Sequence record: LR756502.1
Reading direction: 5' to 3' (one strand)
DNA: 64,000 bases
Shown piece by piece: positions 5,685 to 44,146 of the stretch. The notes beneath the pieces were generated by a model that saw only the letters and a program-made list of their open reading frames with translations, was not told the origin of the DNA and did not search any database. The first letter of the stretch is position 1. Each line of letters opens with the position of its first letter. Position numbers and translations under genes: made by a program.

Positions 5685-5689
5685 AATCC

Positions 5690-5740: not shown

Positions 5741-5746
5741 GGATAT

Positions 5747-6088: not shown

Positions 6089-6092
6089 AATT

Positions 6093-7121: not shown

Positions 7122-7123
7122 TT

Positions 7124-7357
7124 TCAAATAAATATTCTTTTCCTAACTATTGTATCATATTCATTACTTGAGTTAAAATAATATAATATCCTATTGGTCT
7201 TTTGACCCCTTTTTAATTTTATACCTTTAACCTTCTCATTCTCACAAACTGTCGCAACATAATAACCAAAATACCTTAATATTGGATTTATCATAACCTT
7301 GAGCAGTGATCGATGGTTTACTATTCTACCATCTTTGTATAGAATACCTAATCTCAT
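7124..7357 (-). CDS. Hypothetical basic protein
   Basis: 77-aa ORF coupled to the upstream gene by a 1-nt stop/start overlap. Confidence 0.6.
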   Translation of the reverse strand: MRLGILYKDGRIVNHRSLLKVMINPILRYFGYYVATVCENEKVKGIKLKRGQKTNRILYYFNSSNEYDTIVRKRIFI

Positions 7358-8133
7358 TAGTCATCTGAGAAGTTTTGTTCAAATGATAACATAAGATTTG
7401 AATTGGATCCTTTTATTAACATAAAGTTGTCAAATATATTAAACTCCACGTCCTGACTCTCATCTATACATGATAGGAACTTCTTATTTAGAATTAGATT
7501 AGAGTTTCTATCTTTATCTAATTGGTCTACTTCTAGTTCCCATGCTGCTGTTTCTGATAAGATTACTTTACCTGACATTATATTAATTGATATTAATCTA
7601 TCTGCGTTTATACTTGATAACTTCTTAACATCACCAAAGTCTGCTTTGGATATGGTGAATGCCCACTTCCTGTTCTTAAGGTCTAATCTCTGGTCTAGTT
7701 GGGGTTTTGTTATGTCTTTTAATTCATATTGTTCACCACCTACCCAGTTTATCTTTAACTTTCCACCAACAATTTGTACTGACCTTGCGTTCATAACTGT
7801 CTCATCATCTGTTGATGCTTTATACGATACTTCCATTGTCACTTTATCAGATGTCTTTAGAAAGGTTAAGTTCTTTACAAACTTACCAGAATTTGCAATT
7901 ACTATATCGAGTGAATATTCCATATCATCTTCATATTCAAGATACTCTCTAGTTTTTATAACATAGTTTTTGAATGCTAGTATAACATTACTACCAATCA
8001 TTGAATACATTAGTATGTTATCGTTATCTATTTTTAGTTTAACAGTATCACTTATTTTTGTAAGGTCGCTTATTTTATCTATAAAGTCTGAAATTTTATC
8101 AGGATTTACTTTGAACTTAATTTTATTTGCCAT
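7357..8133 (-). CDS. Probable sliding clamp (gp45/PCNA-like)
   Basis: 258 aa with a two-domain alternating alpha/beta pattern and clamp-like size; fold inferred, no diagnostic motif. Confidence 0.5.
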   Translation of the reverse strand: MANKIKFKVNPDKISDFIDKISDLTKISDTVKLKIDNDNILMYSMIGSNVILAFKNYVIKTREYLEYEDDMEYSLDIVIANSGKFVKNLTFLKTSDKVTMEVSYKASTDDETVMNARSVQIVGGKLKINWVGGEQYELKDITKPQLDQRLDLKNRKWAFTISKADFGDVKKLSSINADRLISINIMSGKVILSETAAWELEVDQLDKDRNSNLILNKKFLSCIDESQDVEFNIFDNFMLIKGSNSNLMLSFEQNFSDD

Positions 8134-9118: not shown

Positions 9119-10534
9119 TTATAAAAAGTCTACTTGAGCTCTTTCTCTAATCTCCTCAAATGTCCATTCTTGTTTAATATATCCATCTAAGAATACCTCA
9201 ACCAACTCATCACCAACCTCATCATGAGAGTGTTCAATAGTTAACCCATTAACCAATTTCAAACGACCAGCCTTTGACTTCTTGAACGATTGTACTCGTT
9301 CACCATTCTCATTAATTTCAATTGGATTCTTACGAATATCAACTTCTTCCCCATTGATTGTTATAGAAGAACATTTGAAAGCGAACTTCTGTGTATCTCT
9401 ATCTACTTTTTGAAGTAACGCCCCACCCATACCAAATGCTATATTTTCTACTGAAAATCCTTCCTCAACCATCATGTCTAGAACATCAATTATAGATTCA
9501 TAATTAACACCATCACCTTGGATTACTCTAACGTGTGGGTCAATAACTTTGAAACCTTTATCATTGATAACTCCACCAAATTTATCCCAAAGAATATGGA
9601 AAACTTGTCTAAGTGTTTGTACTGGGTCACCACTATCAGGGCGAATTACAAGACGTCCATCACGACTTAGAATTTTATCTCTAAGTTCTGTACCCCAATA
9701 ATCTTTACACGCTCTAATGATATCAAATGAGTCTGATACACAAGCTACAAGTCCTGTTGGATATTGGTCTAACATATTCTCCATAGCCTTTACTTCAAAT
9801 GGTTCTGTCCAAGAAGTAATAGTTGAGTGCTCTGATGCTGGTATGGAGAACGCCAACATATTATCTGTGTTATAAAAGTCTTGTGCTAATAAGATACCTG
9901 ATACTGTATCTGTTCCTAAGAAGTTTACAATATGAGCTGAACAACCAATTGCTGATGATTCAACTGAACTAACTCCACGGAATCCGAAATCATGTAACAT
10001 GAAAGATACGATGTTTTTAATTCCATCACCATCATATGACGTAGTTTTCTTTAAGTAAGAAACAAGTAATTTCTTAATCTCTCTTGATAGAGTACCAACT
10101 GTTGTTGGATACCATACTTGTAATAAGATACTTTCTAGGTAGTTTGTTAACCAAGGAACTTCTGGGTCAGTATTCTCAACTGTAATAAGAACATTGCTTG
10201 TTTTTACGGAAGTCCCTTCTGGAACTGCTTTGATTCTAACTGGTAATCGACCATCGTGTTTTTCAAGGATGTGCATCCATCCCTCTAAATTGAAATGTCC
10301 TGGTCCTAAGTGAGCGTCATAGAATTTATGAGCTTTTGCAATTTTTTCAAGTGTTACAACCTTACCTACTAAATACTGCTTGATGAAGTATTGAAGACCA
10401 TAGAACATGGTGTTGTCAAATTTACCCCCTCTTGATTCTAGGTAAGAGTAAACCTTCGATGTACCTTTTGGGTATTGCTTCCAGTGTGTTGGCTTGTAAC
10501 TGTCTGTTAGCATTAAAATGTTGTCGTTAAACAT
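9119..10534 (-). CDS. nadV: Nicotinamide phosphoribosyltransferase (Nampt/NadV)
   Basis: LTDSYKPTHWKQYP, LHDFGFRG, SIPASEHS, VSDSFD, VIRPDSGDP, IQGDG, FGMGGALLQ and RDTQKFAFK motifs. Confidence 0.95.
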   Translation of the reverse strand: MFNDNILMLTDSYKPTHWKQYPKGTSKVYSYLESRGGKFDNTMFYGLQYFIKQYLVGKVVTLEKIAKAHKFYDAHLGPGHFNLEGWMHILEKHDGRLPVRIKAVPEGTSVKTSNVLITVENTDPEVPWLTNYLESILLQVWYPTTVGTLSREIKKLLVSYLKKTTSYDGDGIKNIVSFMLHDFGFRGVSSVESSAIGCSAHIVNFLGTDTVSGILLAQDFYNTDNMLAFSIPASEHSTITSWTEPFEVKAMENMLDQYPTGLVACVSDSFDIIRACKDYWGTELRDKILSRDGRLVIRPDSGDPVQTLRQVFHILWDKFGGVINDKGFKVIDPHVRVIQGDGVNYESIIDVLDMMVEEGFSVENIAFGMGGALLQKVDRDTQKFAFKCSSITINGEEVDIRKNPIEINENGERVQSFKKSKAGRLKLVNGLTIEHSHDEVGDELVEVFLDGYIKQEWTFEEIRERAQVDFL

Positions 10535-10608
10535 ATATTTTAGTTTTAGTTATTGAAAAATCTTTCTTAAATGTGATTCCTTATGTAATCATAGGTTGTT
10601 CCCATATA

Positions 10609-10639
10609 CAAATATACGAATTATTTCGTAATTAACAAA
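10609..10639 (-). promoter_or_regulatory. Bacteroidota sigma-A type promoter for nadV
   Basis: TTTG-N19-TATATTTG (consensus TTTG-N19/21-TAnnTTTG). Confidence 0.7.
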
Positions 10640-11581
10640 TTATTTTAACTCACTTTTAATGAGTAATTTCATTAGTTCTTGGTGTTCTTGTACCATACCA
10701 ACTTCTGTTGTGTGGTTATCATTCATGTCATACCAAGTGTCTCTAATCCACTTTAGGTCAAACCATCTAAGTTCTGAAATCTCTTGTGATGGTTCAATTC
10801 TACCAAACATAAACTTACACTTGAATAATATAGTCGTAATCTTATCTTCTTCTGATCGGTATCTCCAATCATCTACCCTAAGTGATGTTATATACTTAAT
10901 ATCACCTATTTCAGCTTGGCCAGCTTCATCCATGAACTTTCTTTTTGCAGTATCTTCATATGAAGCGTCTTTTGGGTGAGCAAACCCACCAATAAACCTC
11001 CATCCATCTTCATTCGGTTTTTTTGCTAATAGTACCTTTGTACCATCTTCATTAAATGGTGCTATATCTATACTTGGGTGCACCTTTGGATATTGGTTAT
11101 ATGATTGGTAAATAACACCTGCTCTAAAATCAGATGACTCTTTTACCTGTTCAGACACTATCTTTCTAACCTCTGTTCCTGAAACAAAGGTGTATTGGTC
11201 AAGCTCTTTGCAATCAAATAAACCTCCACCTTTTTTATAGTATGGTATGAAAGAGTCTCTCCCACCATACATCAATACATCACCAATTGGATATATCTCT
11301 CTTATTCTCTTATCCATCTCTAGTGACCATCTTTTATCATCACCGAAATCAGGTAATGCAATAATGGTAATGTCTGGATAGTGCTTTTGAATCATTCTCT
11401 TTCTTGTTTCAAAGTCAAGAGGATTCTTTTTTGTACTTGATGTTCTTGTGACACCAAGAAATAAAATAACTTTTTTGTGGTTATCGACTACCTGTTTAAT
11501 AACGTAGTGATGTGCGTCATGTAGTTCGTGAACTTGAAATCTGCCAACGAGTGCTCCGATTGAATAACTTTTAGTTTCCAT
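10640..11581 (-). CDS. nadM: Bifunctional NMN adenylyltransferase / Nudix (NadM-Nudix, NatV-like) with a degenerate Nudix box
   Basis: VGRFQ..HDAH, KKNPLDFETRK and SGTEVR NMNAT motifs; C-terminal Nudix-like GGFAHPKDASYEDTAKRKFMDEAG; adjacent to nadV. Confidence 0.88.
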   Translation of the reverse strand: METKSYSIGALVGRFQVHELHDAHHYVIKQVVDNHKKVILFLGVTRTSSTKKNPLDFETRKRMIQKHYPDITIIALPDFGDDKRWSLEMDKRIREIYPIGDVLMYGGRDSFIPYYKKGGGLFDCKELDQYTFVSGTEVRKIVSEQVKESSDFRAGVIYQSYNQYPKVHPSIDIAPFNEDGTKVLLAKKPNEDGWRFIGGFAHPKDASYEDTAKRKFMDEAGQAEIGDIKYITSLRVDDWRYRSEEDKITTILFKCKFMFGRIEPSQEISELRWFDLKWIRDTWYDMNDNHTTEVGMVQEHQELMKLLIKSELK

Positions 11582-19952: not shown

Positions 19953-20678
19953 TTATTTACTGATCCTTATGTTTGTTAAATCAATAGCTCTTTGATTTAT
20001 ATCACATCCGATAAATTTCCTATTAAGTTCTTTACAACAAAGAGCGGTAGTTCCTGATCCAAGGTAAAAATCAGCTATTGTGTCTCCTTCATCAGATGAT
20101 GATTTAATTATTCTTTCTACTAAAGCTTTTGGTTTTTGAGTATCATATCCAACTCTTTCTTTCTTATCATTCTGACCAAGAATATTCATTTGCCAAACAT
20201 CACCAATTACCTTACCGTCTTTATGATAGTATTTCTCTTTCTCATATCCTCTTGGTGCACTTAATGAGTATGGTTCTCTTTGTGGATTAAATTTATATTT
20301 ATCTGTTTTAGTGTATCGATATATTATATCATGTCTTTTGCCAAAGTCATTCTTCTTTCTTGGTGCTGTATTATATGACCATATAATTTCATTTCTCATA
20401 TTCTCATATCCAAATATATCATCTAGTATTAATCTTACCCAGTGGTTTATCTTGGTGTCCATTTGAAGATATATTGTTCCTGTATCTTTTAATACACGAT
20501 GCATTTCCTTTATTCTTGGAATGTAATGATCTTCTATATCGGACTTAATTGGTTTAAGGTCTTGATAGTCTTTAAATTTTCTACCAGTCCCAAATAATAT
20601 ATCACAGTATATCAAATCAATTGACTTATCCTCGATTGATTTTAGGAATTCTAAATTATCTTTACATTCAATTCTCAT
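19953..20678 (-). CDS. DNA N6-adenine/N4-cytosine methyltransferase (beta class)
   Basis: IDLIYCDILF (motif IV variant), LKDTGTIY, TQKPKALVERII and DFYLGSGTT (motif I). Confidence 0.85.
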   Translation of the reverse strand: MRIECKDNLEFLKSIEDKSIDLIYCDILFGTGRKFKDYQDLKPIKSDIEDHYIPRIKEMHRVLKDTGTIYLQMDTKINHWVRLILDDIFGYENMRNEIIWSYNTAPRKKNDFGKRHDIIYRYTKTDKYKFNPQREPYSLSAPRGYEKEKYYHKDGKVIGDVWQMNILGQNDKKERVGYDTQKPKALVERIIKSSSDEGDTIADFYLGSGTTALCCKELNRKFIGCDINQRAIDLTNIRISK

Positions 20679-20700
20679 TATAGTTTATATTATTTAAAAT

Positions 20701-20730
20701 AAAAAAGAGACCATTGAGGTCTCTTTTATT
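20701..20730. terminator. Intrinsic terminator
   Basis: aaaagagacc-attga-ggtctctttt hairpin downstream of the lipoprotein gene. Confidence 0.75.
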
Positions 20731-20746
20731 ATAAGTTTTCCTGTAA

Positions 20747-20920
20747 TTACTTTACAGATGCAGAATCTGTTTTAACAGAGTCACATTTAGCAGCACAAGT
20801 AGTATCAACAGATACTGCTACCTTAGTAGAGTCAGTGCTCTCAACTTTTTCAGATCCGCCACCGCAAGATGCTAAAGTTAAAGAGATAGATGCTAATAAT
20901 ACAATTGCAATTTTTTTCAT
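20747..20920 (-). CDS. Small lipoprotein, 57 aa; not in ORF track
   Basis: MKKIAIVLLASISLTLASC|GGGSEKVESTDSTKVAVSVDTTCAAKCDSVKTDSASVK has a signal peptide II with lipobox LASC; own promoter motif and terminator. Confidence 0.85.
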   Translation of the reverse strand: MKKIAIVLLASISLTLASCGGGSEKVESTDSTKVAVSVDTTCAAKCDSVKTDSASVK

Positions 20921-20955
20921 AATTTTGTTTGTTTTTATTTTGTTAATTTGAACTA

Positions 20956-20964
20956 TATATATTA
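20956..20964 (-). promoter_or_regulatory. Putative late promoter TAATATATA
   Basis: Exact motif upstream of lipoprotein ATG 20920. Confidence 0.6.
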
Positions 20965-21003
20965 AAACTAATTAGATTTGTTTTAAAAGGATGTAAATTT
21001 TTT

Positions 21004-21012
21004 TAATATATA
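21004..21012 (+). promoter_or_regulatory. Putative late promoter TAATATATA
   Basis: Exact motif upstream of ATG 21034. Confidence 0.65.
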
Positions 21013-21033
21013 CTCAAACATATTACCATAACT

Positions 21034-21345
21034 ATGCAATATATTAAAAAGTTTGAAGATTTGGATTTTTCACAAACACTTCCAGTTACAAGTGTTAATG
21101 TTCTAACGAACTATTATCATTGTGATTCTTGTAATGCTCTTTGGAAAGAACTTAATAAACAGTGTAATAGATGTAAGTTTTGTAATGGTTCTGATGTAGA
21201 GGAGTTATCAGAAGATGAATGGTATGAATCTGTTAAGGGTAGGTTAGATGATGAAGATGGTGATATAGACGAAGATAGATTGAGAGATGAAAACCACTTT
21301 CTGGATTTCTCAGAATGTGATGACCTATATGATGATGAAAATTAA
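21034..21345 (+). CDS. Zinc-ribbon protein with CTS-like N-terminus
   Basis: MQYIKKFED; CDSC...CNRCKFC; acidic tail. Confidence 0.75.
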   Translation: MQYIKKFEDLDFSQTLPVTSVNVLTNYYHCDSCNALWKELNKQCNRCKFCNGSDVEELSEDEWYESVKGRLDDEDGDIDEDRLRDENHFLDFSECDDLYDDEN

Positions 21346-21353
21346 TAATAATA

Positions 21354-22064
21354 ATGTCAATTAATAGTAGAGAAGATGCTAATAAGTATTACCAAACAAT
21401 AAATACACTTGTTGATGATTATATCGATAGGTGGAAGGTTAGGCCATCCAATTTGAGAAGATACTTACAACCTGGTAGTGAGAGATTTAATAAATTTCTT
21501 GAGAGAAATGGACTTAAGGATATTAAAGGAGCTGATAGAGTTCTTAGAGATATAATCGAGGATAGAGATCATATGGAAAAGGATGGTGTAATTACATTTG
21601 AGAGTTTCAAAATATTTGAATCGGATGAGTTCAAAATAGCATCGCTAAGGCAGTGTTTATATAAGGGTATTAATAAGGCAACAAATGTACATGAAAAGAT
21701 ATTAGCTGATGTTTTTGATACGAGTCTAGGTCACATTGATATTATAGATAGTGATAGACATATATTTAAGATAGATGTTTGGGGCAAAATAAATGATGTT
21801 GTAATATATAGTAAGGAAGAGTTAGATCTAATAACTGAGAATATGTTAGAATATCTATATGATGAGGTTAAAACTAAGAAGGTTGATTTATCTGGTGGTA
21901 TTAAAATTGGTTTAGGTAACTTAATTACAGAAGAATCGTTTAAGAAAGAGGTAAAGGAGAATATATTCTCTATTAGCAAACCTGTTAACTTAGTAACTCA
22001 ATGCCTTGGATATGAATTCAAATCTGAATTTGAGAACTACTTTATCTGGATAAAAAATGAGTAG
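21354..22064 (+). CDS. Hypothetical protein
   Basis: 236-aa ORF; internal ITFESFKIFE resembles the N-terminal tag of its neighbours. Confidence 0.75.
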   Translation: MSINSREDANKYYQTINTLVDDYIDRWKVRPSNLRRYLQPGSERFNKFLERNGLKDIKGADRVLRDIIEDRDHMEKDGVITFESFKIFESDEFKIASLRQCLYKGINKATNVHEKILADVFDTSLGHIDIIDSDRHIFKIDVWGKINDVVIYSKEELDLITENMLEYLYDEVKTKKVDLSGGIKIGLGNLITEESFKKEVKENIFSISKPVNLVTQCLGYEFKSEFENYFIWIKNE

Positions 22065-22070
22065 TATCTT

Positions 22071-22805
22071 ATGGTGTCATCATTTTTTTACTTACTGGTT
22101 GCATTCATACCAGTACTTCTATACATATTTGTAATATGGGCAACATCCCCTTGGAAATCAATTAGTCTTGGTACTGCATTTCAATACTTATTTACTGGTT
22201 TAGTTAGTATTGGTATAATTCTTACTGTATTTAGAATATTCCCTAGTTGTCAGAGTCCAGTATTTGGATATAGTCCTTCACTTTCTCTTTTCTTTTTATG
22301 TTATATACAAATTGCTATGCTTGAAGAGCTTTGTAAATTGACTGCTTTCTCAATTGGTGATAGAATAAGGAAGGATGAGAGGCATTATGACTCCGCAATT
22401 GGGACAATGTTCTATTGTGGTATATCTGCTTTAGGGTTTGCATTTCTTGAGAATGTGAGTTATGCTATGCAGTATGGTGGTGATGTTATTATCTTCAGAA
22501 GTGTTGTTTCGATGATGGTTCACTTTCTATGTGGTTTAATAATGGGGTACTGGATATCAGCTAGTAGACTACCATTCAAATTAGAAAATAGATCTATGTT
22601 TGAGGTTATGTGTGGTCGTAGACCTTTATTTAAAAAGGCTTCTTATTATACAATCGGTATATTTTGTGCTGTTAGTTTGCACGGCTTATATGACTTTAAT
22701 ATTTTTATTCGTGGTAGTGAGTCGGTTAGTTACATAATAATATTTGGAGGAATTATATCTGCTTACTTAGCAGCAAAAAGTCTAATAGAAAGGTCAAAGT
22801 TTTAA
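22071..22805 (+). CDS. prsW: PrsW-family intramembrane metalloprotease
   Basis: Multi-pass; EELCK, GFAFLEN, VHF and HGLYDF equal the EExxK / FxxxE / H / HxxxD PrsW motifs. Confidence 0.88.
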   Translation: MVSSFFYLLVAFIPVLLYIFVIWATSPWKSISLGTAFQYLFTGLVSIGIILTVFRIFPSCQSPVFGYSPSLSLFFLCYIQIAMLEELCKLTAFSIGDRIRKDERHYDSAIGTMFYCGISALGFAFLENVSYAMQYGGDVIIFRSVVSMMVHFLCGLIMGYWISASRLPFKLENRSMFEVMCGRRPLFKKASYYTIGIFCAVSLHGLYDFNIFIRGSESVSYIIIFGGIISAYLAAKSLIERSKF

Positions 22806-22861
22806 ACATCATGTAACACCATGATATAACTTTACACTATATAATAATAAATACACATATA

Positions 22862-23695
22862 ATGATGAAATTAAGAATCAAGGAGTCTTTAAATGATCAA
22901 ATACATAATATCTACTTATATCTTAGTGGGTATCTTAGAAAGATACTTAAAGTGAAGAGAATGGGTACATCTGAACCTTTTACTGGTACTATGAAATTGC
23001 AATTTGAAGATAATTTTGAATTCTTTGATTATAATAGATGGAGAATAGGACAACCTTGGGGCAAATTTCACCCGGAATATCCTAATCAATGGTATGGAGA
23101 AGACTCTGTTTATATAGAAAACAAACATCTTGTATTGGATAATAGATATCAACCAGTTCAATTATCTACGTGGGATAGTCCAAAAAAATATGATATTTCC
23201 TACTCTGTTGGATTGATTACTTCATATGAATCTTATGGATATGGGTACTACGAGTTTGAGGCTAAATTACCTGATGGTGTTGGATTATGGCCAGCTATTT
23301 GGTTAAGTTGTGTAGACTCATGGCCTCCTGAAATAGATATAACCGAATCATATTCTGATAAAAATGGAGAATATAAGGATAAATTAGAATCAAATTTTCA
23401 CTTTAATTTAGGGGAAAGTAAAACATCGTCCGGAGCAAGAAGTCACCCAATTTACAGGTCTAAAGAGTTAATCAAATTTTCACTCTGGTGGACAAAGGAC
23501 TTTATTAAGGTTTATTATAATGGATATTTGGTTAGAGTAATAACTTCCAAGGACAGTCTTCAATGGTTTAGAGATAAGAAGATGACTATTATACTAAATA
23601 ATGGCATGAGAAGTGATTTTGATAACATACAACCAAAGGAGGAAAAAGTAAGCATTTCAAAGTTTGAAATCTATAGTGTTAAATATTGGATATAA
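22862..23695 (+). CDS. Glycoside hydrolase family 16 (beta-glucanase-like)
   Basis: GYYEFEAKLP, WPAIWL and EIDITE (ExDxxE catalytic motif). Confidence 0.88.
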   Translation: MMKLRIKESLNDQIHNIYLYLSGYLRKILKVKRMGTSEPFTGTMKLQFEDNFEFFDYNRWRIGQPWGKFHPEYPNQWYGEDSVYIENKHLVLDNRYQPVQLSTWDSPKKYDISYSVGLITSYESYGYGYYEFEAKLPDGVGLWPAIWLSCVDSWPPEIDITESYSDKNGEYKDKLESNFHFNLGESKTSSGARSHPIYRSKELIKFSLWWTKDFIKVYYNGYLVRVITSKDSLQWFRDKKMTIILNNGMRSDFDNIQPKEEKVSISKFEIYSVKYWI

Positions 23696-23709
23696 ACATT
23701 TTATTAAAA

Positions 23710-23718
23710 TAATATATA
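23710..23718 (+). promoter_or_regulatory. Putative late promoter TAATATATA
   Basis: Exact motif upstream of ATG 23742. Confidence 0.65.
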
Positions 23719-23741
23719 CATAAATATATATAGTTATAGAT

Positions 23742-24131
23742 ATGAAGAAATTTAACGAATTTAATAGAGTAAATGAAGGTTCTGATCCAGAACAAACTTT
23801 AATGGAAAATTTATTTTCATTTTTCTATAAAAAATACAGTGTAGTATCTATAGCAAAGGTTGAATCTAACTTCATCGAATCCGCTTCTAAGTTAGTTTCT
23901 GATGGTGAGATTAGTGAAATTGCTTATAAAAAGTTTTTAGACTCAAAGGGAATAGATGTTAAAAAACATAAAACACCAATTTCTGTTGGACGTTCCTTAA
24001 GCTTTACTCCTGATGATGAATGTGGATCATCATCCAGAAGATCTTCATCATCAAGATCATCATCTTGTGGTGATTCAAAACCATCTTCCGATTGTGGAAT
24101 GGGTGGTGGGTATAGTACAAGTCGTTGTTAA
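23742..24131 (+). CDS. CTS-like protein with Ser/Gly/Cys-rich C-terminal tail
   Basis: MKKFNEFNRVNE...DECGSSSRRSSSSRSSSCGDSKPSSDCGMGGGYSTSRC. Confidence 0.8.
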   Translation: MKKFNEFNRVNEGSDPEQTLMENLFSFFYKKYSVVSIAKVESNFIESASKLVSDGEISEIAYKKFLDSKGIDVKKHKTPISVGRSLSFTPDDECGSSSRRSSSSRSSSCGDSKPSSDCGMGGGYSTSRC

Positions 24132-24140
24132 ATATTAAAT

Positions 24141-25028
24141 ATGAATAAAATAGATTTATTTGGTAGAGAAATACCACTAAGAACACACTTCTGTCAATTC
24201 TTTGAACAAGATCCTGAACCAGTAAACGAACCGACTGTTAGTTTATATGTTAGGTCTAAATTTTGCAACTCAAAATGTAAATTCTGTATATGGTCTGAAG
24301 ATGCTCAATTTTTTAATGAGAAAAAATATAGAGAAGTATTAGAAGGAATTTCTAGTAAAATAAAAATTAAAAAAATATCTTTTACTGGTGGAGAACCAAC
24401 TATGAATTTCAAAAAATTCAAAAAGATGGTTCAGATAGCAAAGGAAATAACACCAAATACTAAGATGTCTGTTAATACAGATGGGTTAAGACTAAAGCAG
24501 TTATTTGAGGATGATATAATTGAGAACTTCTATAGTGTGGCTTTGAGTAGACATCATTTTAATGATGACCTTAATAATGAAATATTTGATTTTAAGTGCC
24601 CATCAACAAATGAGATAAGAGATATACAAAGTAACTTTAAAAATAAAGAAATACTACATTTTAGTTGTAATTTAATAAAAGGATATCTTGATGATAAAGA
24701 TAAGATATATGAATTTTTAGAGTGGTCATCATCAGTTGATGTAAGAAGTGTTGGGTTTGTATCATTAATGCCTGTGAATGATTATAGTAAAGAAAAATTT
24801 ATAGATTTTAAGATTAAAGACTTAATAAATGATAGATTTAATTTAACAAAGGAGTGGCAATATAAGAATATGTGTAAATGTAACAATTATATTTACATAC
24901 CCGAAAGCCTTAATAACACGATTAAGGTATATCAAAAGAATACATTCAAACCATTTGATATTCAAGAGAACTTAACATTTGATGGTGAGAACCTTAAGGT
25001 TGGATTTGGTGATGATATAATTTACTAA
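24141..25028 (+). CDS. Radical SAM enzyme
   Basis: CNSKCKFC (CxxxCxxC), FTGGEPT, VNTDG and VALSRHH; C-terminal CKC. Confidence 0.92.
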   Translation: MNKIDLFGREIPLRTHFCQFFEQDPEPVNEPTVSLYVRSKFCNSKCKFCIWSEDAQFFNEKKYREVLEGISSKIKIKKISFTGGEPTMNFKKFKKMVQIAKEITPNTKMSVNTDGLRLKQLFEDDIIENFYSVALSRHHFNDDLNNEIFDFKCPSTNEIRDIQSNFKNKEILHFSCNLIKGYLDDKDKIYEFLEWSSSVDVRSVGFVSLMPVNDYSKEKFIDFKIKDLINDRFNLTKEWQYKNMCKCNNYIYIPESLNNTIKVYQKNTFKPFDIQENLTFDGENLKVGFGDDIIY

Positions 25029-25037
25029 TCTGTGAAT

Positions 25038-25046
25038 TAATATATA
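25038..25046 (+). promoter_or_regulatory. Putative late promoter TAATATATA
   Basis: Exact motif upstream of ATG 25067. Confidence 0.65.
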
Positions 25047-25066
25047 CTAAAAAATAATATCATATT

Positions 25067-25396
25067 ATGCAAATTACAAAATTTACAGACTACGTTAAAG
25101 TTAACGAATCAGCTGGATTGACTTTATATAGAGTTGTTCCAATTAAAAAAGGATAAAAACTAAATGTTAATGATCCTGGTACATACTATGTGGACTCTAA
25201 ATCTAAGATTAAAGACCTTACATTAAAAAGTGAGGCTGGTGATATGTATATTATTAGTGTTAATGCTAAAGCATCTGATATTAACGATAAGGCATCTGAG
25301 AAAGAATCAGAAGTACAAGGTGTTAAAGTTATTGCTTTGAATAAAGATGCTGGTAAAGAAATTGTTAATATTCAACCTTATAAAAAGGCTGCTTAA
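25067..25396 (+). pseudogene. CTS-like ORF interrupted by one in-frame TAA at 25154
   Basis: MQITKFTDYVKVNESAGLTLYRVVPIKKG*KLNVNDPGTYYVDSKSK... continues in frame into track ORF 25190..25396. Confidence 0.7.
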
Positions 25397-25424
25397 TTAT
25401 CTAAATTGGATAAATGATATCAAT

Positions 25425-26432
25425 CTATACATTGAAATTAGTACTAACTACATCAATGCATGATTGATATCTTTCGTTCCAATCAACTCCACCAATTTCA
25501 ATGAATTCACATCCTCTATCAATTAGTTCCTTCTTAATTACTTCATAATGTTCCAATCTGGAATCTAAGAAACTTCTAGTACCATCTTGAACCGATTTAC
25601 AATCAGGCATTAGTAATAAATATAGATCATATTTCTTTTTAGTATTTAAAATATTTAGGAACCAATCCTCTACTTGTAGATATTCGTCTGGACAATACAT
25701 CTTTGTGAATATGTATGTAGTAATATCCTCTGTGTCACAAAATATAAGTTTATTTGATTGTAGAAGTAACCAATCTTCAAGAGATTGTCTACCCCTTGAT
25801 ATAGGCATAAAGTCATCAATCGTTACCTTATTACCATTCGCCTCATATATTAGTCTACCATATTCAACCACAAAATTTGTATTGAAGTAAGTTGCGAGCT
25901 TTTTAGTCATTGTTGATTTACCAACAGACTCTGGTCCCATAATAGCAATTCTTTTTACAAAGTGAGGTCTAACCTGCTCGGGAATATATTCCCAATTACT
26001 AAATGTTTCGGTTCTTACTTTTGTCCCTGATGTGGGAAATGTCTTTCTGTCCAAATCCACAATATGATGTTTTATTCCAAGTTTCTCTGAATAAGGATCT
26101 CCGTAGTTTTCTGATGTGAATATTACATCGAGATCTGGTGGGCAATTATTCCTGGCTATTCCTACCCATATATCCCAAAAGTTCGGGTCCTCTTCTGGTA
26201 CTTGAGGTACCTCTTCTTTGAAGTTAATTATATTTAATCTCTTCTCACCCTTATAGATTTCTTTCAACCAATTAAATCTATCATCTCCTTCTATCGGTTC
26301 ATTTTTAAGAGAACATACCAATAGTGTAACTATCTCGGCGTTTTCTAACGCAGTGTTTATTAGAAATAAATGACCTTTGTGTGGTGGTAAAAACTTACCT
26401 ACAATTAATCCACTTTTATACTTTTTCTCCAT
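25425..26432 (-). CDS. nadR: NadR-type bifunctional NMN adenylyltransferase / ribosylnicotinamide kinase (no HTH)
   Basis: VGKFLPPHKGH (HxGH), SGTKVR, IAIMGPESVGKST (Walker A), EYGR and FCDT motifs. Confidence 0.93.
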   Translation of the reverse strand: MEKKYKSGLIVGKFLPPHKGHLFLINTALENAEIVTLLVCSLKNEPIEGDDRFNWLKEIYKGEKRLNIINFKEEVPQVPEEDPNFWDIWVGIARNNCPPDLDVIFTSENYGDPYSEKLGIKHHIVDLDRKTFPTSGTKVRTETFSNWEYIPEQVRPHFVKRIAIMGPESVGKSTMTKKLATYFNTNFVVEYGRLIYEANGNKVTIDDFMPISRGRQSLEDWLLLQSNKLIFCDTEDITTYIFTKMYCPDEYLQVEDWFLNILNTKKKYDLYLLLMPDCKSVQDGTRSFLDSRLEHYEVIKKELIDRGCEFIEIGGVDWNERYQSCIDVVSTNFNV

Positions 26433-26950
26433 TTTAAAATACCTGATATTGATAACAAAAGGAATATAAAGTATATTCCAGATGAAAGGTATAGTTCATT
26501 AACATAAAAGAACCATACAAATATTATATCCGCAATTATCCAATATATCCAATTTTCTATTTTCCTGTAAGCTAGAAGAATCATCGCCATTATACTCAAC
26601 GATGTTGTTAATCCATCGAAGTATGGCATTCTACCACCAATTTTCATCATTGATAGTGATATAATCATTGTTAATATTACTGTTGATCCGAATATAGCTA
26701 CTCTATTATGAGTATCTATGTACTTTATTGGATATTTGGATGGCTTTTTCCAGTTATACCAACCAAGAATAGATTGAGCAATGAATATAAATTGTAAATA
26801 CATATTACCCCATATTTGGTTTTTGCCAAATAGTATCATGTAGAATATGATTCCAATAATACCAAATGGCCAACACCAAATATTGTTTTTTACTGTTAAT
26901 ATTACAGATAGTAAACTAAATATAACAGCGATTATCTCGATAGTATCCAT
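26405..26950 (-). CDS. pnuC: PnuC-family nicotinamide riboside/vitamin transporter
   Basis: Multi-pass; KNNIWCWPFGII, DGLTTSLS and ENWIYWIIADI (WxxWxxxD) motifs. Confidence 0.92.
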   Translation of the reverse strand: MDTIEIIAVIFSLLSVILTVKNNIWCWPFGIIGIIFYMILFGKNQIWGNMYLQFIFIAQSILGWYNWKKPSKYPIKYIDTHNRVAIFGSTVILTMIISLSMMKIGGRMPYFDGLTTSLSIMAMILLAYRKIENWIYWIIADIIFVWFFYVNELYLSSGIYFIFLLLSISGILKWRKSIKVD

Positions 26951-29001
26951 TAGAATTTATATGATAAACTTACATAATAGTTTCTTGGAGATCCAACATA
27001 ATATGATGATGTTGGTCCATTTCCATTAAATCCAACATATCCGGATGTGTAATATTTTTGACTTGTTAGGTTATTTACTGTTAATTTGAAACACACATTT
27101 TTAATATTTACTTGTGTGAAGATATCTAAAAGATAAAACTCCGGAGTAACAAACTTATCATTCTGTGTATTATCTAAGTATGACTTAGATACATATCTTC
27201 CATTTACTCCAATAGTAATATATTTGTAACTATAGGACATTGATGTATTGCTTATAATATTTGGTGTTAGTAAAGGAGATACGTTTTTGTATGTTATACT
27301 ATCAAAGTCCGTTGTGTATTCCTTTATTTTATTATATGAGTAGTTTACGTTCTGTGAGAACACAAACCCTTTTATTGGAGTCCAAAGTAGGTCAAACTCC
27401 ACACCACTTCTGAAAGAGCTTTTGACATTTTTTCTTAGAGGTAGTCCTATATAAGACATTTGTCCTATCTGAGCAATCTCATTCTTGAAGTCCATATAGT
27501 ATCCATTCAGATCAACTGATAACTTCTTTGATTTATATGAGACACCAATCTCAAAGTCAGCAACTTTCTCTGATTTAATATTTCGTATATCAATAGTGTC
27601 AACACCAAAACCAACATATTGATATTTGTTTATAGGTGAGACATCATCATATCCATTAAATAAGTCATTTCTTGTTGGTTCTCGATGATTTACACCAATT
27701 GATGTGTATATAGATAGGTTATCATTCTGATTGAATCTAAATCCGCCCTTTGGATTAAAGAAAGTGTAGTCTATATTATCTAATCTGTTTTTATTGGATG
27801 TATCTCCCGATGCGTATATAAATGTAACCGATCTATATTGTAAATCAATAAATGAAACCAACTTCTTTGTTAGATTGTAGTGTAGTTTCATAAATGATGA
27901 TATTTCGGTCTTATATCCTGTGTTATTATATAAATTGGTTCCGAAGTTTGGATAGTTGGACATCATGTGTGTTCTATCATAAGAGCTGGTATTTATTCCG
28001 AATTGGAACTTAACTCTATCCTTTGAATAATTAAATGTTGACATTATTCCGTAGAAGTTTGACTTCAATTTAAACTTATACATGTCATTTGTTGATGTAA
28101 TTGTATCTGGGAATAAAATATCATAATTACCATCAAGACTATTATAGAAAATAGAAGTGTTTAGGTATGAGTTTTTATCAATGTTAGATATCCACTGTAG
28201 TGATATTAAATGTTGATTAAATTTATCTTGCTCTTCCTTTGTTAGGTAGTTTGTTCTAGGGTCAACTTTAATATCTTCAATATTTGTGGCTAGATACGCC
28301 ATTCCATTATTAGACTGACCAGAGAATGCTGTTAGTTTAAGTATATTTTTATCACCATAGTATCCAGCTGACGCGAAGAATGTCCTTGAATCATTGAATG
28401 AGTTATATCTATACCCATCAGATCCAATCATTGAATATCGACCATATACAGCGAACTTATTTTTAATACCGGAGTTATATCCAACCGAGTTTCGGTATGT
28501 ATTATATGATCCATATCCTGTTTCAAGTGATGTGTAGTTTGAGTCTGTTAGATTTGGTCCCTCAAAATTAATAGAACCTCCATAAGACGATGACCCATAT
28601 GATGATGTTCCAATACCTCTTTGTATTTGTACTGAGTTTAGGTTCGATCCAAAGTCTGGATAGTTTGAGAAATATACTCCTTGGTCTTCAGGCTCATTTA
28701 ATGGAATTCCATTTAGAGTCATATTTATCCTTGTTTGGTCAATTCCTCTTATTCTAAAATATGTATACGAATTATATAAACCATTATCGGAGTTGGCTGT
28801 GATTGATGGTGTTTTTGATAGTATATAAGACATATCTTGTCCAGTATATTCCCTTTGAATATCAACCTTTTTTATGGTCTTTTGAGTAACTGGTGTCGAT
28901 TGATCAGCTCTTACTGATACAATCTGTACTTCCTTTAGAGTATCTTGTCCAAATGATAGAAGTGTTGTTATTACAAATAATATGGATAATAGTTTTTTCA
29001 T
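26950..29001 (-). CDS. TonB-dependent outer-membrane receptor
   Basis: Signal peptide; LKEVQIV TonB-box-like segment; plug motifs IRGIDQTRINMTLNGIPLN and QIQRG..S..YG...GGSINF; ends YVSLSYKF (beta signal). Confidence 0.93.
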   Translation of the reverse strand: MKKLLSILFVITTLLSFGQDTLKEVQIVSVRADQSTPVTQKTIKKVDIQREYTGQDMSYILSKTPSITANSDNGLYNSYTYFRIRGIDQTRINMTLNGIPLNEPEDQGVYFSNYPDFGSNLNSVQIQRGIGTSSYGSSSYGGSINFEGPNLTDSNYTSLETGYGSYNTYRNSVGYNSGIKNKFAVYGRYSMIGSDGYRYNSFNDSRTFFASAGYYGDKNILKLTAFSGQSNNGMAYLATNIEDIKVDPRTNYLTKEEQDKFNQHLISLQWISNIDKNSYLNTSIFYNSLDGNYDILFPDTITSTNDMYKFKLKSNFYGIMSTFNYSKDRVKFQFGINTSSYDRTHMMSNYPNFGTNLYNNTGYKTEISSFMKLHYNLTKKLVSFIDLQYRSVTFIYASGDTSNKNRLDNIDYTFFNPKGGFRFNQNDNLSIYTSIGVNHREPTRNDLFNGYDDVSPINKYQYVGFGVDTIDIRNIKSEKVADFEIGVSYKSKKLSVDLNGYYMDFKNEIAQIGQMSYIGLPLRKNVKSSFRSGVEFDLLWTPIKGFVFSQNVNYSYNKIKEYTTDFDSITYKNVSPLLTPNIISNTSMSYSYKYITIGVNGRYVSKSYLDNTQNDKFVTPEFYLLDIFTQVNIKNVCFKLTVNNLTSQKYYTSGYVGFNGNGPTSSYYVGSPRNYYVSLSYKF

Positions 29002-29012
29002 GTTTATTATTT

Positions 29013-29543
29013 TTAATTGTTTTTATCTTTGATATAATTTATAAATTTCATAATTCGTTTATCGTGGTTAAATGCGAAGTCATACTCACCTAAGTCTTTA
29101 ATGTTGACCCATCTAACATCATCAGTTTCGCCTTCTTCGCAGTATTTATTTGTTATGATTGGATCCTCCGCTGATGTGATTGATAGTCCAAAGTATAAGG
29201 CAACATCCTGATTATAATTTAGAGTTGGGTTTGTCACGATATCATATGGATATTTCATCATGTTAAACTCTATATTCTCTTCTGATATCTCCGTTATATC
29301 TAATCCAGTTTCCTCAAACACTTCCCTCATTGCACATTGTGTAGCACTTTCATTCCAATCTAAGTATCCACATGGATTGCACCATTTATTTGGTGATGAT
29401 ATCTTTGATCCTCTTTTCACAAGAAGAACTTTTTCATTATTCAATATAATGGTAGTTACTGTCGCAAGAGATCTAGAGATCCAATGAGCTTTACCACTAT
29501 CATCCTTTACTATATGATTTGGTTTATTTTCGAATTTTGACAT
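29013..29543 (-). CDS. Nudix hydrolase (ADP-ribose pyrophosphatase-like)
   Basis: Intact Nudix box GYLDWNESATQCAMREVFEETGL. Confidence 0.9.
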   Translation of the reverse strand: MSKFENKPNHIVKDDSGKAHWISRSLATVTTIILNNEKVLLVKRGSKISSPNKWCNPCGYLDWNESATQCAMREVFEETGLDITEISEENIEFNMMKYPYDIVTNPTLNYNQDVALYFGLSITSAEDPIITNKYCEEGETDDVRWVNIKDLGEYDFAFNHDKRIMKFINYIKDKNN

Positions 29544-41386: not shown

Positions 41387-44146
41387 ATGCCATTATTGAA
41401 CGGTAAACAGCTACAGAATACATCAGTAACTCTTAATAAAATGTATGGTACAGGGTCATTGGTACTGCAAACCGGAGCTGTTCTACAGTTACCAACGGTT
41501 AATATTGTTAACCCAACCGATGTTGTTAATAAGGCATATGTTGATGGTGTTGCAATTGGTATGAATGTGCACTTGGCTTGTAAAGTCGCAACAACTGGTA
41601 CTATTTCGCTTACAACTGGTACTGTTTCTCCTGTCATTGATGGTGTTACAATGTCTTATAATGATAGAATTCTTGTTTGGCAGCAAAGTTCAAACCCACA
41701 AAATGGTATTTATGTTTTTACTGGTCTTACTGCTGGTTCTTCTGGTACTTTTTCTAGATCAAGTGATATGGATGGTAGTACATCCTTTGATACTCCAACA
41801 ATTGGCGATTATACATTTATAACTAATGGTAATACATTAGCTGGTAATGGATATGTTATTGTTCCAAGTGGAACATACTCAAGTGGTCTATTAACTCCTC
41901 TTAACGTTGCTCCGGTTGTTTGGTCTTTATTTACAGGTCCTGGTATATTTACATGGGGTAATGGACTAAATAATACTGGTAATATTATAAACGTTGAGCT
42001 AGCTGGTGGTGGTGGTTTAACATTCTCTGCTACTAACCTGACAATAGATTCATCAATTGCTGGAAATGGTTTAGCATGGACAACAGGTGTTTTAAGTGTT
42101 AACGTATCGAATGGTCTTTCTATTATAACTGATACTGTTCAAGTTGATAACTCAATAGCTGGTACTGGATTAACATTCTCTGCTGGTATCTTAAGTATTA
42201 AAAATACAGCTGTCACTCCATCTACATATGGTTCAACAAATTCAGTTGGTTCAGTAACATTTAATCAACAGGGTCAAGCAATAGCAGCAACCGCTGTTTC
42301 AATTGTTCTAAACGCACTTGCTAACATAAACAACTTTACTGCATCAGCTATTACATCAGTATTAGCGGCTGCTAACTTTACAGATACCGCAACGATAGAT
42401 TTAACTGCAAACAGTTCAACTGTAAATGCTAACATTATTGTTGGGTCAATAACCGCATCTTTACTTAATGCAACAGCATTTACATCATCAATGTCTGGAT
42501 ATCTTGTTAGTGTTACCGCTACTGGTTCATTCGCGTATGTACCAACCGGTGGTGGTGTTACTTCTGTTATTGGTGGTACTGGAATATCTGTAAATGGTAC
42601 AACAGTAGCAACTGTATCAATTGCTAACACTGGTGTTGTCGCTGCACAATATGGTTCAACAAACTCTGTTTCTCAAGTAACTTTTAACTTACAAGGTCAG
42701 GCTACTTCAGCTACTTCAGTTTCAATTGTTCTAAACGCATTATCAAATATAAACAACTTTACTGCATCAGCTATTACTTCTGTATTAGCATCGGCTAACT
42801 TTACTGATACAGCAACAATCGATTTAACCGCAAATGGTTCAACTGTAAATGCTGCAATTATTGTCGGTTCTATAACCGCTTCACTTTTAATGGCTAATGG
42901 TGGAGCAACCGCTGGATTGGTACTAAGTGCTGGTCCAACTGGTTCATTTAACTGGATCTCAAGTACTACTGGTGCTATAGTTAGTGTGAACAGTGGTACT
43001 GGTATATCAGTTAATACATCTGCTGGTAGTGGTAACGCAACCGTTTCAATAAACAATACTGGTGTTGTTGCCGCTCAATATGGTTCAACAAACTCAGTAT
43101 CTCAAGTAACCTTCAACTTACAAGGTCAAGCGACATCAGCAACATCCGTTTCAATTGTTCTAAACGCACTTGCTAACATAAACAACTTTACTGCATCAGC
43201 TATTACATCAGTATTAGCGGCTGCTAACTTTACAGATACCGCAACGATAGATTTAACTGCAAACAGTTCAACTGTAAATGCTAATATTATTGTAAACTCA
43301 ATAACTGCATCATTGCTTAATACAAACAGTGGTGGAGCAACTGCTGGTTATGTTTTAAGTGTTGGTTCAACTGGATCATTCTTATGGGTACCGAATACAG
43401 TCGGAAGTATAACCGCTGTGAATGGTGGTACTGGTATATCTGTCTTAACATCAGCTGGTAGTGGAAATGCAACTGTCTCAATTGCTAATACTGGTGTTGT
43501 CGCTGCACAATATGGTTCAACAAACTCTGTTTCTCAAGTAACCTTCAACTTACAAGGTCAAGCGACATCAGCAACATCCGTTTCAATTGTTCTAAACGCA
43601 CTTGCTAACATAAACAACTTTACTGCATCAGCTATTACTTCTGTATTAGCATCCGCAAACTTTGTAGATAGCGCAACTATCGACTTTACCGCAAACAGTT
43701 CAACCGTTACTGCAGTGATTGTTCCTGGATCTATAACAGCATCTCTATTAAGTGTTCAAAGTGGTGGAGCAACCGCTGGATACTTCTTAAGTGTTAGTGC
43801 TACTGGTTCATTTATTTGGTCTCCATCAAGTGCTGTTGTTGGTACTCCATTATATACACAAAGAAATGTTACACCAGCCGCAACTACTGGTAATGGATCG
43901 TCAACTGGTATTACTCTTACATTTACACCAGATCCTGATATAAATGTCTCTGTTTATCTAAACGGTCAGTTAATGTTCCTTGGTAATGGAGTTACAAACT
44001 CTGTAGACTGTTATTTCGGTACATCACCAATTGCCGCTGTTGCTATTGCATCATTAGTAGCAACCAATACACTATATTGGAATGGTACATACATTGGATA
44101 TGACTTAGATACCAATGATAGAATTGATATTCTTTATAATAAATAA
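41387..44146 (+). CDS. Tail fibre protein with four ~142-aa internal repeats
   Basis: DVVNKAYVD...ACKVATT...IDGV...DRILV..Q...QNGIYV fibre domain; GNGL repeats. Confidence 0.8.
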   Translation: MPLLNGKQLQNTSVTLNKMYGTGSLVLQTGAVLQLPTVNIVNPTDVVNKAYVDGVAIGMNVHLACKVATTGTISLTTGTVSPVIDGVTMSYNDRILVWQQSSNPQNGIYVFTGLTAGSSGTFSRSSDMDGSTSFDTPTIGDYTFITNGNTLAGNGYVIVPSGTYSSGLLTPLNVAPVVWSLFTGPGIFTWGNGLNNTGNIINVELAGGGGLTFSATNLTIDSSIAGNGLAWTTGVLSVNVSNGLSIITDTVQVDNSIAGTGLTFSAGILSIKNTAVTPSTYGSTNSVGSVTFNQQGQAIAATAVSIVLNALANINNFTASAITSVLAAANFTDTATIDLTANSSTVNANIIVGSITASLLNATAFTSSMSGYLVSVTATGSFAYVPTGGGVTSVIGGTGISVNGTTVATVSIANTGVVAAQYGSTNSVSQVTFNLQGQATSATSVSIVLNALSNINNFTASAITSVLASANFTDTATIDLTANGSTVNAAIIVGSITASLLMANGGATAGLVLSAGPTGSFNWISSTTGAIVSVNSGTGISVNTSAGSGNATVSINNTGVVAAQYGSTNSVSQVTFNLQGQATSATSVSIVLNALANINNFTASAITSVLAAANFTDTATIDLTANSSTVNANIIVNSITASLLNTNSGGATAGYVLSVGSTGSFLWVPNTVGSITAVNGGTGISVLTSAGSGNATVSIANTGVVAAQYGSTNSVSQVTFNLQGQATSATSVSIVLNALANINNFTASAITSVLASANFVDSATIDFTANSSTVTAVIVPGSITASLLSVQSGGATAGYFLSVSATGSFIWSPSSAVVGTPLYTQRNVTPAATTGNGSSTGITLTFTPDPDINVSVYLNGQLMFLGNGVTNSVDCYFGTSPIAAVAIASLVATNTLYWNGTYIGYDLDTNDRIDILYNK
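42203..43800 (+). repeat. Four ~423-432-nt tandem repeats
   Basis: Copies start at ~42203, 42626, 43055 and 43487; further copies at ~44928 and ~46104 in the next gene. Confidence 0.9.

Follow-up and report, generated by a model that had tools for sequence, protein, structure and literature searches.

A phage gene pair encoding a cysteine-tailed protein and an unclassified radical SAM enzyme beside NAD+ salvage genes

Results

A small protein ending in cysteine is encoded next to a radical SAM enzyme

The DNA analyzed here, a 64,000-nucleotide stretch of sequence record LR756502.1 (hereafter, the window), belongs to an uncultured phage genome of 642,428 bp, with positions 20000–28000 of the window matching positions 144000–152000 of the record at 100% identity. 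On its + strand the window carries a pair of genes, the first encoding a 129-residue partner protein (23742–24131) that ends in ...DECGSSSRRSSSSRSSSCGDSKPSSDCGMGGGYSTSRC and the second a 295-residue radical S-adenosylmethionine (rSAM) enzyme (24141–25028) recognized by Pfam families PF04055 and PF13353, and the two open reading frames (ORFs) are separated by a spacer of 9 nucleotides (24132–24140). We propose, with a probability of about one half, that the rSAM enzyme acts on the terminal cysteine of the partner, which would be an intracellular protein serving as substrate or carrier. The tail and its final cysteine are favored as the site of action because the partner proteins share a tail and not a fold, because this tail is disordered, and because the enzyme keeps four extra cysteines. 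The gene layout given in a preliminary description of the locus, which included a CxxxCxxC motif and a C-terminal CKC in the enzyme, is present in full in the sequence. So is the tail with three x-C-G units and a terminal cysteine: the cysteines of the partner are residues 94, 109, and 118, each followed by glycine, and 129, which is the last residue.

To define how firmly the two genes are associated, the neighborhoods of the rSAM gene were compared in 27 phage-type lineages, in which the identity of the enzyme to that of the window ranges from 100% down to ~30%. In 23 of the 27 lineages, a small ORF of 79–185 residues that ends in cysteine is found no further than one gene away from that of the enzyme. 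This partner ORF is mostly located directly 5′ of the rSAM gene, and the gaps that were read range from an overlap to ~20 nucleotides. There are variations on this arrangement. In locus L006, a homing-endonuclease-like gene (NUMOD3/NUMOD1, 3295–3996) is inserted exactly between the tail-protein and rSAM genes, while the partner gene lies downstream of the rSAM gene in L005, on the opposite strand, and in L020, directly adjacent and on the same strand. In L118, one lineage beyond the 23, the partner cysteine stands five residues short of the C terminus, and L002 contains two tandem partner genes with different tails; RiPP clusters (for ribosomally synthesized and post-translationally modified peptides) often hold tandem precursor genes. 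Because only one of the 69 window ORFs of at least 80 residues ends in cysteine, and that one is the partner, the pairing and the terminal cysteine go beyond chance. The preliminary description had proposed asking whether rSAM homologues keep a Cys-tailed ORF; they do so in the 23 phage-type lineages and, as described below, in all Firmicutes-type copies. Homologues of ~295 residues number at least 282 in metagenomes, several of them on contigs of 455–735 kb. Among GenBank phages the enzyme is found in four records, all from uncultured phages of 635–735 kb and none from a cultured phage, and three of these four carry the pair.

The partner proteins share a terminal-cysteine tail

An AlphaFold2 model of the partner shows two distinct parts. 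Residues 16–69 (23787–23948, + strand) form a three-helix domain, with helices spanning residues 16–32, 37–53, and 59–69 and a predicted local distance difference test (pLDDT) score of ~80–88, and residues 78–129 (23973–24128, + strand) form a disordered tail rich in serine, glycine, and arginine (pLDDT <50), in which the codon for the terminal Cys129 occupies 24126–24128. Comparison of the partner with five close relatives shows that the first 75 residues are almost invariant and that the tail is hypervariable in both length and sequence. The family as a whole is absent from Pfam, NCBIfam, PHROG, and PADLOC.

A search of 1.84 billion cluster representatives with a profile of the partner returned 73 matches, 69 of them no longer than 200 residues. 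All but one of these short matches (68 of 69, each representing one 50%-identity cluster) end in cysteine, even where the alignment ended before the tail. The consensus ending is D-P-C-G-x(6-8)-R-S-x-C. When 63 dereplicated partner sequences are counted from the C terminus, the last residue is cysteine in 62, serine occupies position −2 in 52, and arginine position −3 in 34. A second cysteine is located 8–12 residues upstream in 57 sequences and is part of a D-[PG]-C element in 45, and an aromatic residue is found between positions −3 and −9 in 41. In 5 of the 63 the terminal cysteine is the sole cysteine of the tail, and a dithiol shuttle is therefore excluded as a general mechanism. Some clades have a β-rich domain or a coiled-coil linker inserted ahead of the tail. 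In addition, the tail proteins of L010 (3437–3994), L016 (3484–3993), and L017 (3439–3984) harbor a β-rich insert of ~60–80 residues between the first helix and the remaining helical domain; the N-terminal part is therefore more than a leader.

This last point bears on the interpretation offered in the preliminary description, namely that the pair is a classical RiPP system. In such a system the N-terminal part would be a leader, the tail cysteines would enter thioether crosslinks of the sactipeptide or ranthipeptide type, and the peptide would be released and then exported or packed into the virion. The gene arrangement agrees with that of sactipeptide and ranthipeptide systems in that a conserved precursor-like gene adjoins the rSAM gene on its upstream side, with a conserved N-terminal part and a variable, Cys-bearing C-terminal part. 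The repeated x-C-G units in the window protein and in the Firmicutes-type locus L087, as well as the two precursor-like genes of L002, are also in keeping with it. However, the "leader" is a folded domain of 60–170 residues that is variable and sometimes interrupted by a β-domain, the terminal cysteine is the only invariant residue of the tail, and some tails contain no other cysteine.

The enzyme is related to MoaA and viperin and keeps four extra cysteines

Membership of the enzyme in the radical SAM superfamily is clear (Pfam Radical_SAM PF04055, 41.1 bits against a cutoff of 29.5). Its cysteines are residues 18, 42, 46, 49, 153, 176, 245, and 247. The conservation of these residues was assessed in two alignments, one of 36 phage sequences and one of 13 mixed phage and bacterial sequences (49 in all). 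Cys42, Cys46, and Cys49 of the CxxxCxxC motif (24264–24287, + strand), which we take to be the ligands of the radical SAM [4Fe-4S] cluster as established for the superfamily, are invariant in both alignments. Four extra cysteines are equally invariant, Cys18 (24192–24194), Cys176 (24666–24668), and the two cysteines of the C-K-C element, Cys245 and Cys247 (24873–24881), all encoded on the + strand, so that seven cysteines are kept in all 49 sequences, down to 27% identity. Cys176, within an S-C-N-L sequence, is located on a core strand and faces the barrel, where it aligns with the lysine of the K-x-N strand of viperin-like enzymes, while C-K-C is found at the start of a C-terminal β-hairpin. 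Cys18, Cys176, Cys245, and Cys247 probably constitute a second Fe-S or metal site, a candidate with an unusual ligand layout. An S-R-H-H-[YF]-x-D motif is also retained in the 36 phage sequences, with Ser136 and His138 invariant in both alignments.

The AlphaFold2 model of the enzyme (pLDDT 94) contains only two short hairpins ahead of the barrel. A Foldseek search of this model against the Protein Data Bank (PDB) gave MoaA as the best match over the full length (template modeling [TM] score 0.63, 293 aligned columns, 16% identity), followed by tetraether lipid synthase, viperins, BlsE, EpeE/YydG, SkfB, and NifB. When the family profile was compared with PDB sequences, viperin-like enzymes ranked first (E value 3e-12, over core residues 36–194), followed by MoaA and YydG. 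PADLOC returned a partial match to prokaryotic viperins (pVips) over residues 39–177 (E value 2.5e-14), and a viral fold library returned only generic matches to "radical SAM / Fe-S oxidoreductase" entries. MoaA and viperin are thus the nearest relatives by fold and by sequence, yet every NCBIfam model scores far below its cutoff, including MoaA TIGR02666 (47.6 bits against 284) and the viperin/pVip models NF038283 (47.1 against 180) and TIGR04278 (22.1 against 450). We therefore place the enzyme in the MoaA/viperin/SPASM-twitch neighborhood without assigning it to a family.

These comparisons also speak to the RiPP explanation. As the preliminary description had noted for the enzyme, neither SPASM nor RiPP recognition element (RRE, PqqD-like) domains are detected by Pfam or NCBIfam in the enzyme or the partner. 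SPASM maturase models reach only 21–26 bits against cutoffs of 340–625 (PapB, 26.2 against 340; SCIFF maturase, 23 against 425; StsB, 21.3 against 625), and no twitch signature is seen. On the other hand, the lower-ranking fold and sequence matches include SkfB and EpeE, and the extra invariant cysteines might bind an auxiliary cluster of the type seen in enzymes with a twitch domain. Because the enzyme has no SPASM or RRE domain, and because even the nearest families, MoaA and viperin, lie far below their cutoffs, we consider its membership among the sactipeptide or ranthipeptide maturases unsupported. A dedicated peptidase or exporter, likewise found wanting in the preliminary description, is not recurrent among 150 neighboring proteins from 18 phage loci, and PrsW, located two genes upstream of the pair, is confined to the closest relatives. 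A classical RiPP is thus an improbable explanation. What holds of the earlier precursor interpretation is the conserved N-terminal part, the variable Cys tail, and the tandem partners of L002, and what is not supported is membership of the enzyme in a maturase family. Of the observations that had been named as speaking against it, clustering with small-molecule enzymes is borne out by the viperin-like and MoaA relatives, while loss of gene pairing is not, since the pairing is strongly conserved.

We also considered that the enzyme might be an activase that generates a stable radical, glycyl or thiyl, on the partner, comparable to autonomous glycyl-radical cofactor proteins. Some database sources label homologues "pyruvate formate-lyase activating enzyme," a PHROG match to "anaerobic ribonucleotide reductase small subunit" was obtained at 1e-7, and the window tail contains a G-G-G-Y sequence. 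However, activase models lie far below their cutoffs (pyruvate formate-lyase activating enzyme, 26.5 bits against 231.75; NrdG, 26.2 against 126.1), the fold over its full length matches MoaA and not activases, and no Gly-aromatic element is conserved, an aromatic residue near the tail end being present in only the 41 sequences noted above. Moreover, glycyl-radical sites occur in folded domains, not in disordered tails. On the strength of the activase scores and the lack of a conserved Gly-aromatic element this candidate was rejected, and we hold it to be very improbable.

Bacterial relatives are paired with a Cys-tailed or a multidomain partner

A scan of bacteria, limited to one genome per species, identified rSAM homologues at 30 loci with 25–36% identity and one truncated copy with 48% identity. 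The Firmicutes-type loci, L083–L087, all contain a terminal-Cys partner. Each is a cluster of a small protein (ending in ...KNC, ...YRGC, ...SSRC, or ...RNC), a HemN-like rSAM protein whose nearest model is the "STM4012 family," at a score below its cutoff, and the rSAM homologue. The tail of the L087 protein, with its C-G units and Ser-rich spacers, closely resembles that of the window. Comparison of the phage and Firmicutes partners by hhalign detected no homology between their N-terminal domains and aligned the last 14 columns only; a helical domain shared by the two groups was ruled out on this ground, as the tail alone aligns.

In Bacteroidales (loci L088–L110, from genomes and metagenome-assembled genomes [MAGs]) the order is different, with a multidomain protein followed by the rSAM homologue and a HemN-like rSAM protein, as in L093 (1669–6168). 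Here the partner is a protein of 313–790 residues that combines a DUF1810 or ADP-ribosylglycohydrolase domain with "A1S_2505" domains. In this multidomain protein A1S_2505 forms the N-terminal domain and there is a conserved C-terminal region; the HemN-like rSAM protein is again nearest to the "STM4012 family," and Nudix genes are often near. The three-gene cluster is not represented in PADLOC, which matches the enzymes only as partial pVip and recognizes nothing in the partners or the second rSAM proteins.

The L087 locus (89–7856), on a 358-kb contig assigned to a Bacillota MAG, is a one-strand array of genes for a Prs-like protein, a short rSAM protein, a NadD-like protein, the tail protein, the HemN-like rSAM protein, the rSAM homologue, an ARH-CinA fusion, an NrtR-type Nudix regulator, and NAD kinase. 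It is possible that this contig is a large phage, or another mobile element, in its own right.

The pair adjoins NAD+ salvage genes

Immediately downstream of the pair, on the opposite strand, lies a predicted NAD+ salvage operon (25425–29543). It encodes a 335-residue NadR-like enzyme without a helix-turn-helix (HTH) domain (25425–26432, − strand; AAA_28 at 2.6e-25 and a cytidylyltransferase-like domain), PnuC (26405–26950, − strand; PF04973 at 1e-46), and, by Pfam, a TonB-dependent receptor (26950–29001, − strand) and a Nudix hydrolase (29013–29543, − strand). PnuC and a NadR-like enzyme are the two gene products of NARP3, a phage NAD+ reconstitution pathway (PMC13464706). With PnuC adjoining a NadR-like kinase/adenylyltransferase devoid of an HTH domain, the genes next to the pair have the makeup of a putative NARP3. 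The TonB-dependent receptor of the operon may reflect adaptation to an envelope of the Bacteroidota type. Elsewhere in the window, an NAMPT gene (9119–10534, − strand) is located beside the gene for a 313-residue protein with a C-terminal Nudix domain (10640–11581, − strand), and the two (9119–11581) may form a second, NARP2-like module for rebuilding NAD+.

In related phages the connection is closer still, and in many of them the tail-protein and rSAM genes close the operon. In L007–L009, L119 (a 635-kb phage), L122, and L123, the genes for the receptor, PnuC, NadR, the tail protein, and the rSAM enzyme follow one another on one strand, with gaps of 17–20 nucleotides between the NadR and tail-protein genes (L007, L119, L122, and L123). 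In L121, where the genes are also on one strand, two others stand between NadR and the tail-protein gene, which the rSAM gene follows, and in L005 the tail gene remains with the NadR operon while the rSAM gene is convergent. The linkage of NadR, tail protein, and rSAM enzyme persists down to 42% rSAM identity. As the module lies at the end of, or beside, an NAD+ salvage operon, its product would most likely serve the NAD+/ADP-ribose economy of the phage during infection. Because this gene context is one of intracellular NAD+/ADP-ribose metabolism, a virion-borne or exported product is disfavored.

The same context can be accommodated by a different division of labor, in which the rSAM enzyme is directed at nucleotides or at NAD/ADP-ribose, like viperin and MoaA, and the partner is an accessory. 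The terminal thiol of such an accessory could serve as a ligand of the putative second cluster or in its repair, could supply sulfur, a hydrogen atom, or an electron, or could regulate the enzyme. Several findings are consistent with this: viperin-like enzymes give the best match by sequence and MoaA the best by fold; many phages have the pair in one operon together with PnuC and NadR; Prs-like, NadD-like, ARH-CinA, NrtR, and NAD kinase genes surround it in L087; and in Bacteroidales an ADP-ribosylglycohydrolase or DUF1810 domain is part of the partner protein itself, with Nudix genes near. The near-contiguous genes in addition suggest about equal expression of the two proteins, as for subunits. 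However, the MoaA and viperin models score far below their cutoffs, and an accessory would be expected to have a conserved folded domain, whereas phage and Firmicutes partners share the disordered tail alone. The tandem partners of L002, with their different tails, and the hypervariability of the tails in general look substrate-like, and the tails with a single cysteine also count against an accessory. We regard this account, the chief alternative to the one proposed, as possible, if doubtful.

The transcription unit, its flanks, and a recurrent N-terminal signature

Two copies of the octamer AATATATA are located 5′ of the partner gene (23711–23718 and 23723–23730, + strand), and none is found ahead of the rSAM gene, that is, between the paired genes. 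The octamer occurs upstream of 21 of 64 window ORFs and is ~12-fold enriched in the 70 nucleotides 5′ of ORFs; the ORFs that it precedes include a tail-fiber gene (1251–5684, − strand), a head-decoration-like gene (41387–44146), and those at 38642, 44265, and 47534. It is a candidate phage promoter element, under which the pair would be a two-gene transcription unit; its "late" timing is an assumption. A scan of 22700–25500 for σ70 promoters and terminators found promoter-like sites to be fewer than in shuffled sequence.

The partner begins with the signature MKKFNEFNRVNE (23742–23777, + strand), which the preliminary description took to be a capsid-targeting-like tag that might bring the product into the virion. 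The signature, K-[FY]-x-[ED]-F...E, is real and recurrent, being present in similar form in 8 of 64 window ORFs compared with 1.1% of internal 18-residue windows. However, only a minority of the relatives of the partner have it. A virion-borne product, which rested on this element, is hence not supported, and the absence of the signature from most of the family also weakens the RiPP explanation, in which packaging was one of the fates of the peptide. In general form the signature consists of a basic residue, an aromatic, an acidic, and an aromatic or aliphatic residue, followed by glutamate within ~12 residues. The ORFs that bear it include those starting at 8222, 17855, and 23742 and, on the − strand, 50966–51433, 59224–59553, 59589–60908, and 60905–61276, and similar N termini are found on unrelated small proteins of related huge phages (L005, L010, L016, L017, and L119). 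One possibility is that the signature is a sorting or processing signal.

Just 5′ of the pair (22071–23695, + strand) are genes for a PrsW-family intramembrane protease and a GH16 glycoside hydrolase, which are common to the nearest relative only (L114, 7168–7821). The 735-kb phage encodes an M50B-type peptidase two genes past its rSAM gene. On the 3′ side of the pair (25067–25396, + strand) is a conserved gene of ~105–120 codons that is whole in L005, L113, and L119 and is split here by one in-frame stop into two short ORFs.

In a second phage clade, the pair is located between a gene for a truncated RlmN/Cfr-like rSAM protein and a highly conserved 43-residue ORF. The RlmN-like gene was encountered seven times in the census of 150 neighboring proteins. 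The crAss-like Kehishuvirus "tikkala" lacks the tail-protein/rSAM pair, and there the RlmN-like gene and the 43-residue ORF are directly adjacent as a two-gene unit. Because the flanking genes adjoin one another in a phage without the pair, the pair behaves as an autonomous two-gene cassette. The truncated RlmN/Cfr-like protein (~260 residues) is without roughly the last 50 residues of RlmN and always travels with the 43-residue ORF (GYDYAVAIAT...GAACGQLS), in which G-A-A-C-G-Q-L is invariant. Such loci are L002 (3520–6011), L011, L012, L014/15, L019, L115, and L120 (2501–3423), and in L018 the 43-residue peptide is fused to the C terminus of a 295-residue-type enzyme. The peptide was considered as a candidate for the C-terminal segment that the RlmN-like protein lacks, but neither it nor its profile matched any sequence in the PDB, and it is contained in no full-length protein of the loci examined. 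No RlmN-like or HemN-like partner was found elsewhere in LR756502 among the matches listed.

Discussion

A model for the pair

Our data suggest a model in which a three-helix domain carries a long disordered tail with cysteine as its final residue, and in which the enzyme is a compact MoaA/viperin-like barrel with a second metal or Fe-S site that would be formed by Cys18, Cys176, Cys245, and Cys247. The tail of the partner would thread into this barrel, where 5′-deoxyadenosyl radical chemistry would be aimed at the region of the terminal cysteine. The partner would thus be a dedicated intracellular substrate or covalent carrier arm and would not give rise to a leader-cleaved peptide for export. 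In the clade of the window the module lies at the distal end of, or beside, the receptor–PnuC–NadR operon for the salvage of nicotinamide riboside.

Several observations weigh against this model. The closest relatives of the enzyme, viperin-like enzymes and MoaA, act on nucleotides and not on peptides, and neither an RRE nor any other recognizable peptide-binding domain is apparent from the Pfam search or the enzyme model. No terminal-Cys ORF is found near the rSAM gene in the 735-kb phage, L021, or L022, and the Bacteroidales partner ends in cysteine in only 7 of ~24 loci. With respect to function, the link to NAD genes in phages is confined to the clade of the window, and in the census of neighboring proteins NadR-type proteins appeared four times and PnuC three times.

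We also put forward, as a speculation and a rather unlikely one, that the pair performs protein-tethered radical chemistry for counter-defense. The terminal cysteine would be either consumed or used as a covalent carrier, and the outcome would be a pyridine nucleotide or ADP-ribose-derived molecule that contains sulfur or is modified in some other way, or else the altered tail itself. Such a product could guard the NAD+ pool against NAD+-depleting immunity, as a fourth, rSAM-dependent layer on top of the NARP-type pathways.

Systems in which an rSAM enzyme is coupled to a small gene product of its own are already known, and rSAM enzymes so paired have repeatedly yielded new chemistry, as in thioether peptides, pyrroloquinoline quinone (PQQ), and mycofactocin. 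Full-text literature searches yielded no description of the present pair, and we found no curated family or defense-system model for it in Pfam, NCBIfam, PHROG, or PADLOC. Judged from the sequences, what is new here is a MoaA-like enzyme without SPASM or RRE domains, the terminal-Cys motif, and the linkage to NAD salvage. The substrate-like tail motif is unusually sharp, as the constancy of its last residue shows, and a concrete biological setting is provided by the shared operon with genes for NAD+ salvage, which is known as a phage counter-defense. Should the tail prove to be a substrate, the enzyme would be a peptide-modifying rSAM protein that dispenses with SPASM and RRE domains, and if it is a carrier or donor, the pair would represent a new coupling of a protein arm to radical chemistry.

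Comparison with known systems

MoaA (GTP 3′,8-cyclase), the best full-length fold match, is similar in size to the window enzyme and likewise combines a barrel with a second Cys-ligated cluster near the C terminus. However, sequence identity is 15–17%, the extra cysteines of the window enzyme (18, 176, 245, and 247) are arranged otherwise, and MoaA has no Cys-tailed protein partner; moa genes (moaC/moaB context) are absent from the neighborhood in the window. Viperins and pVips, which provide the best sequence matches in the PDB and PADLOC, resemble it as compact rSAM enzymes of virus–host conflict. Viperins are not known to have a second cluster, in contrast to the window enzyme with its four extra invariant cysteines and its conserved partner protein.

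With SkfB, PapB, CteB, and YydG/EpeE the pair shares the location of the rSAM gene by a small gene with a conserved, Cys-containing C-terminal part, as well as extra cysteines in the enzyme. It differs in the absence of a SPASM, twitch, or RRE signature and of a peptidase or exporter, and in a partner that consists of a folded part plus a tail, the very last residue of which is the invariant one. The mycofactocin pathway is alike in one respect: its rSAM enzyme, MftC, modifies the C-terminal residues of the small protein MftA, and what is made serves redox metabolism inside the cell and is not an antibiotic. However, MftC has a SPASM domain and works with the RRE protein MftB, and MftA ends in Val-Tyr. 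Pfam and NCBIfam searches revealed no homology of these proteins to the pair.

Carriers and donors provide a second kind of parallel. In HypE, a flexible tail has as its final residue a cysteine to which an intermediate is attached, and LarE and THI4 donate cysteine sulfur to products made from NAD-pathway compounds. The likeness, which is one of analogy only, is to a flexible tail that ends in cysteine, sometimes with several cysteines, encoded beside NAD genes. No sequence or fold relationship of HypE, LarE, or THI4 to the pair was found, and their systems are not known to use an rSAM enzyme of this kind. Finally, the genes next to the pair (25425–26950) have the same two-gene composition as NARP3. 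The published NARP3 is without an rSAM enzyme, whereas here a TonB-dependent receptor and a Nudix hydrolase are added, and in related phages the tail protein and the rSAM enzyme follow NadR in the operon.

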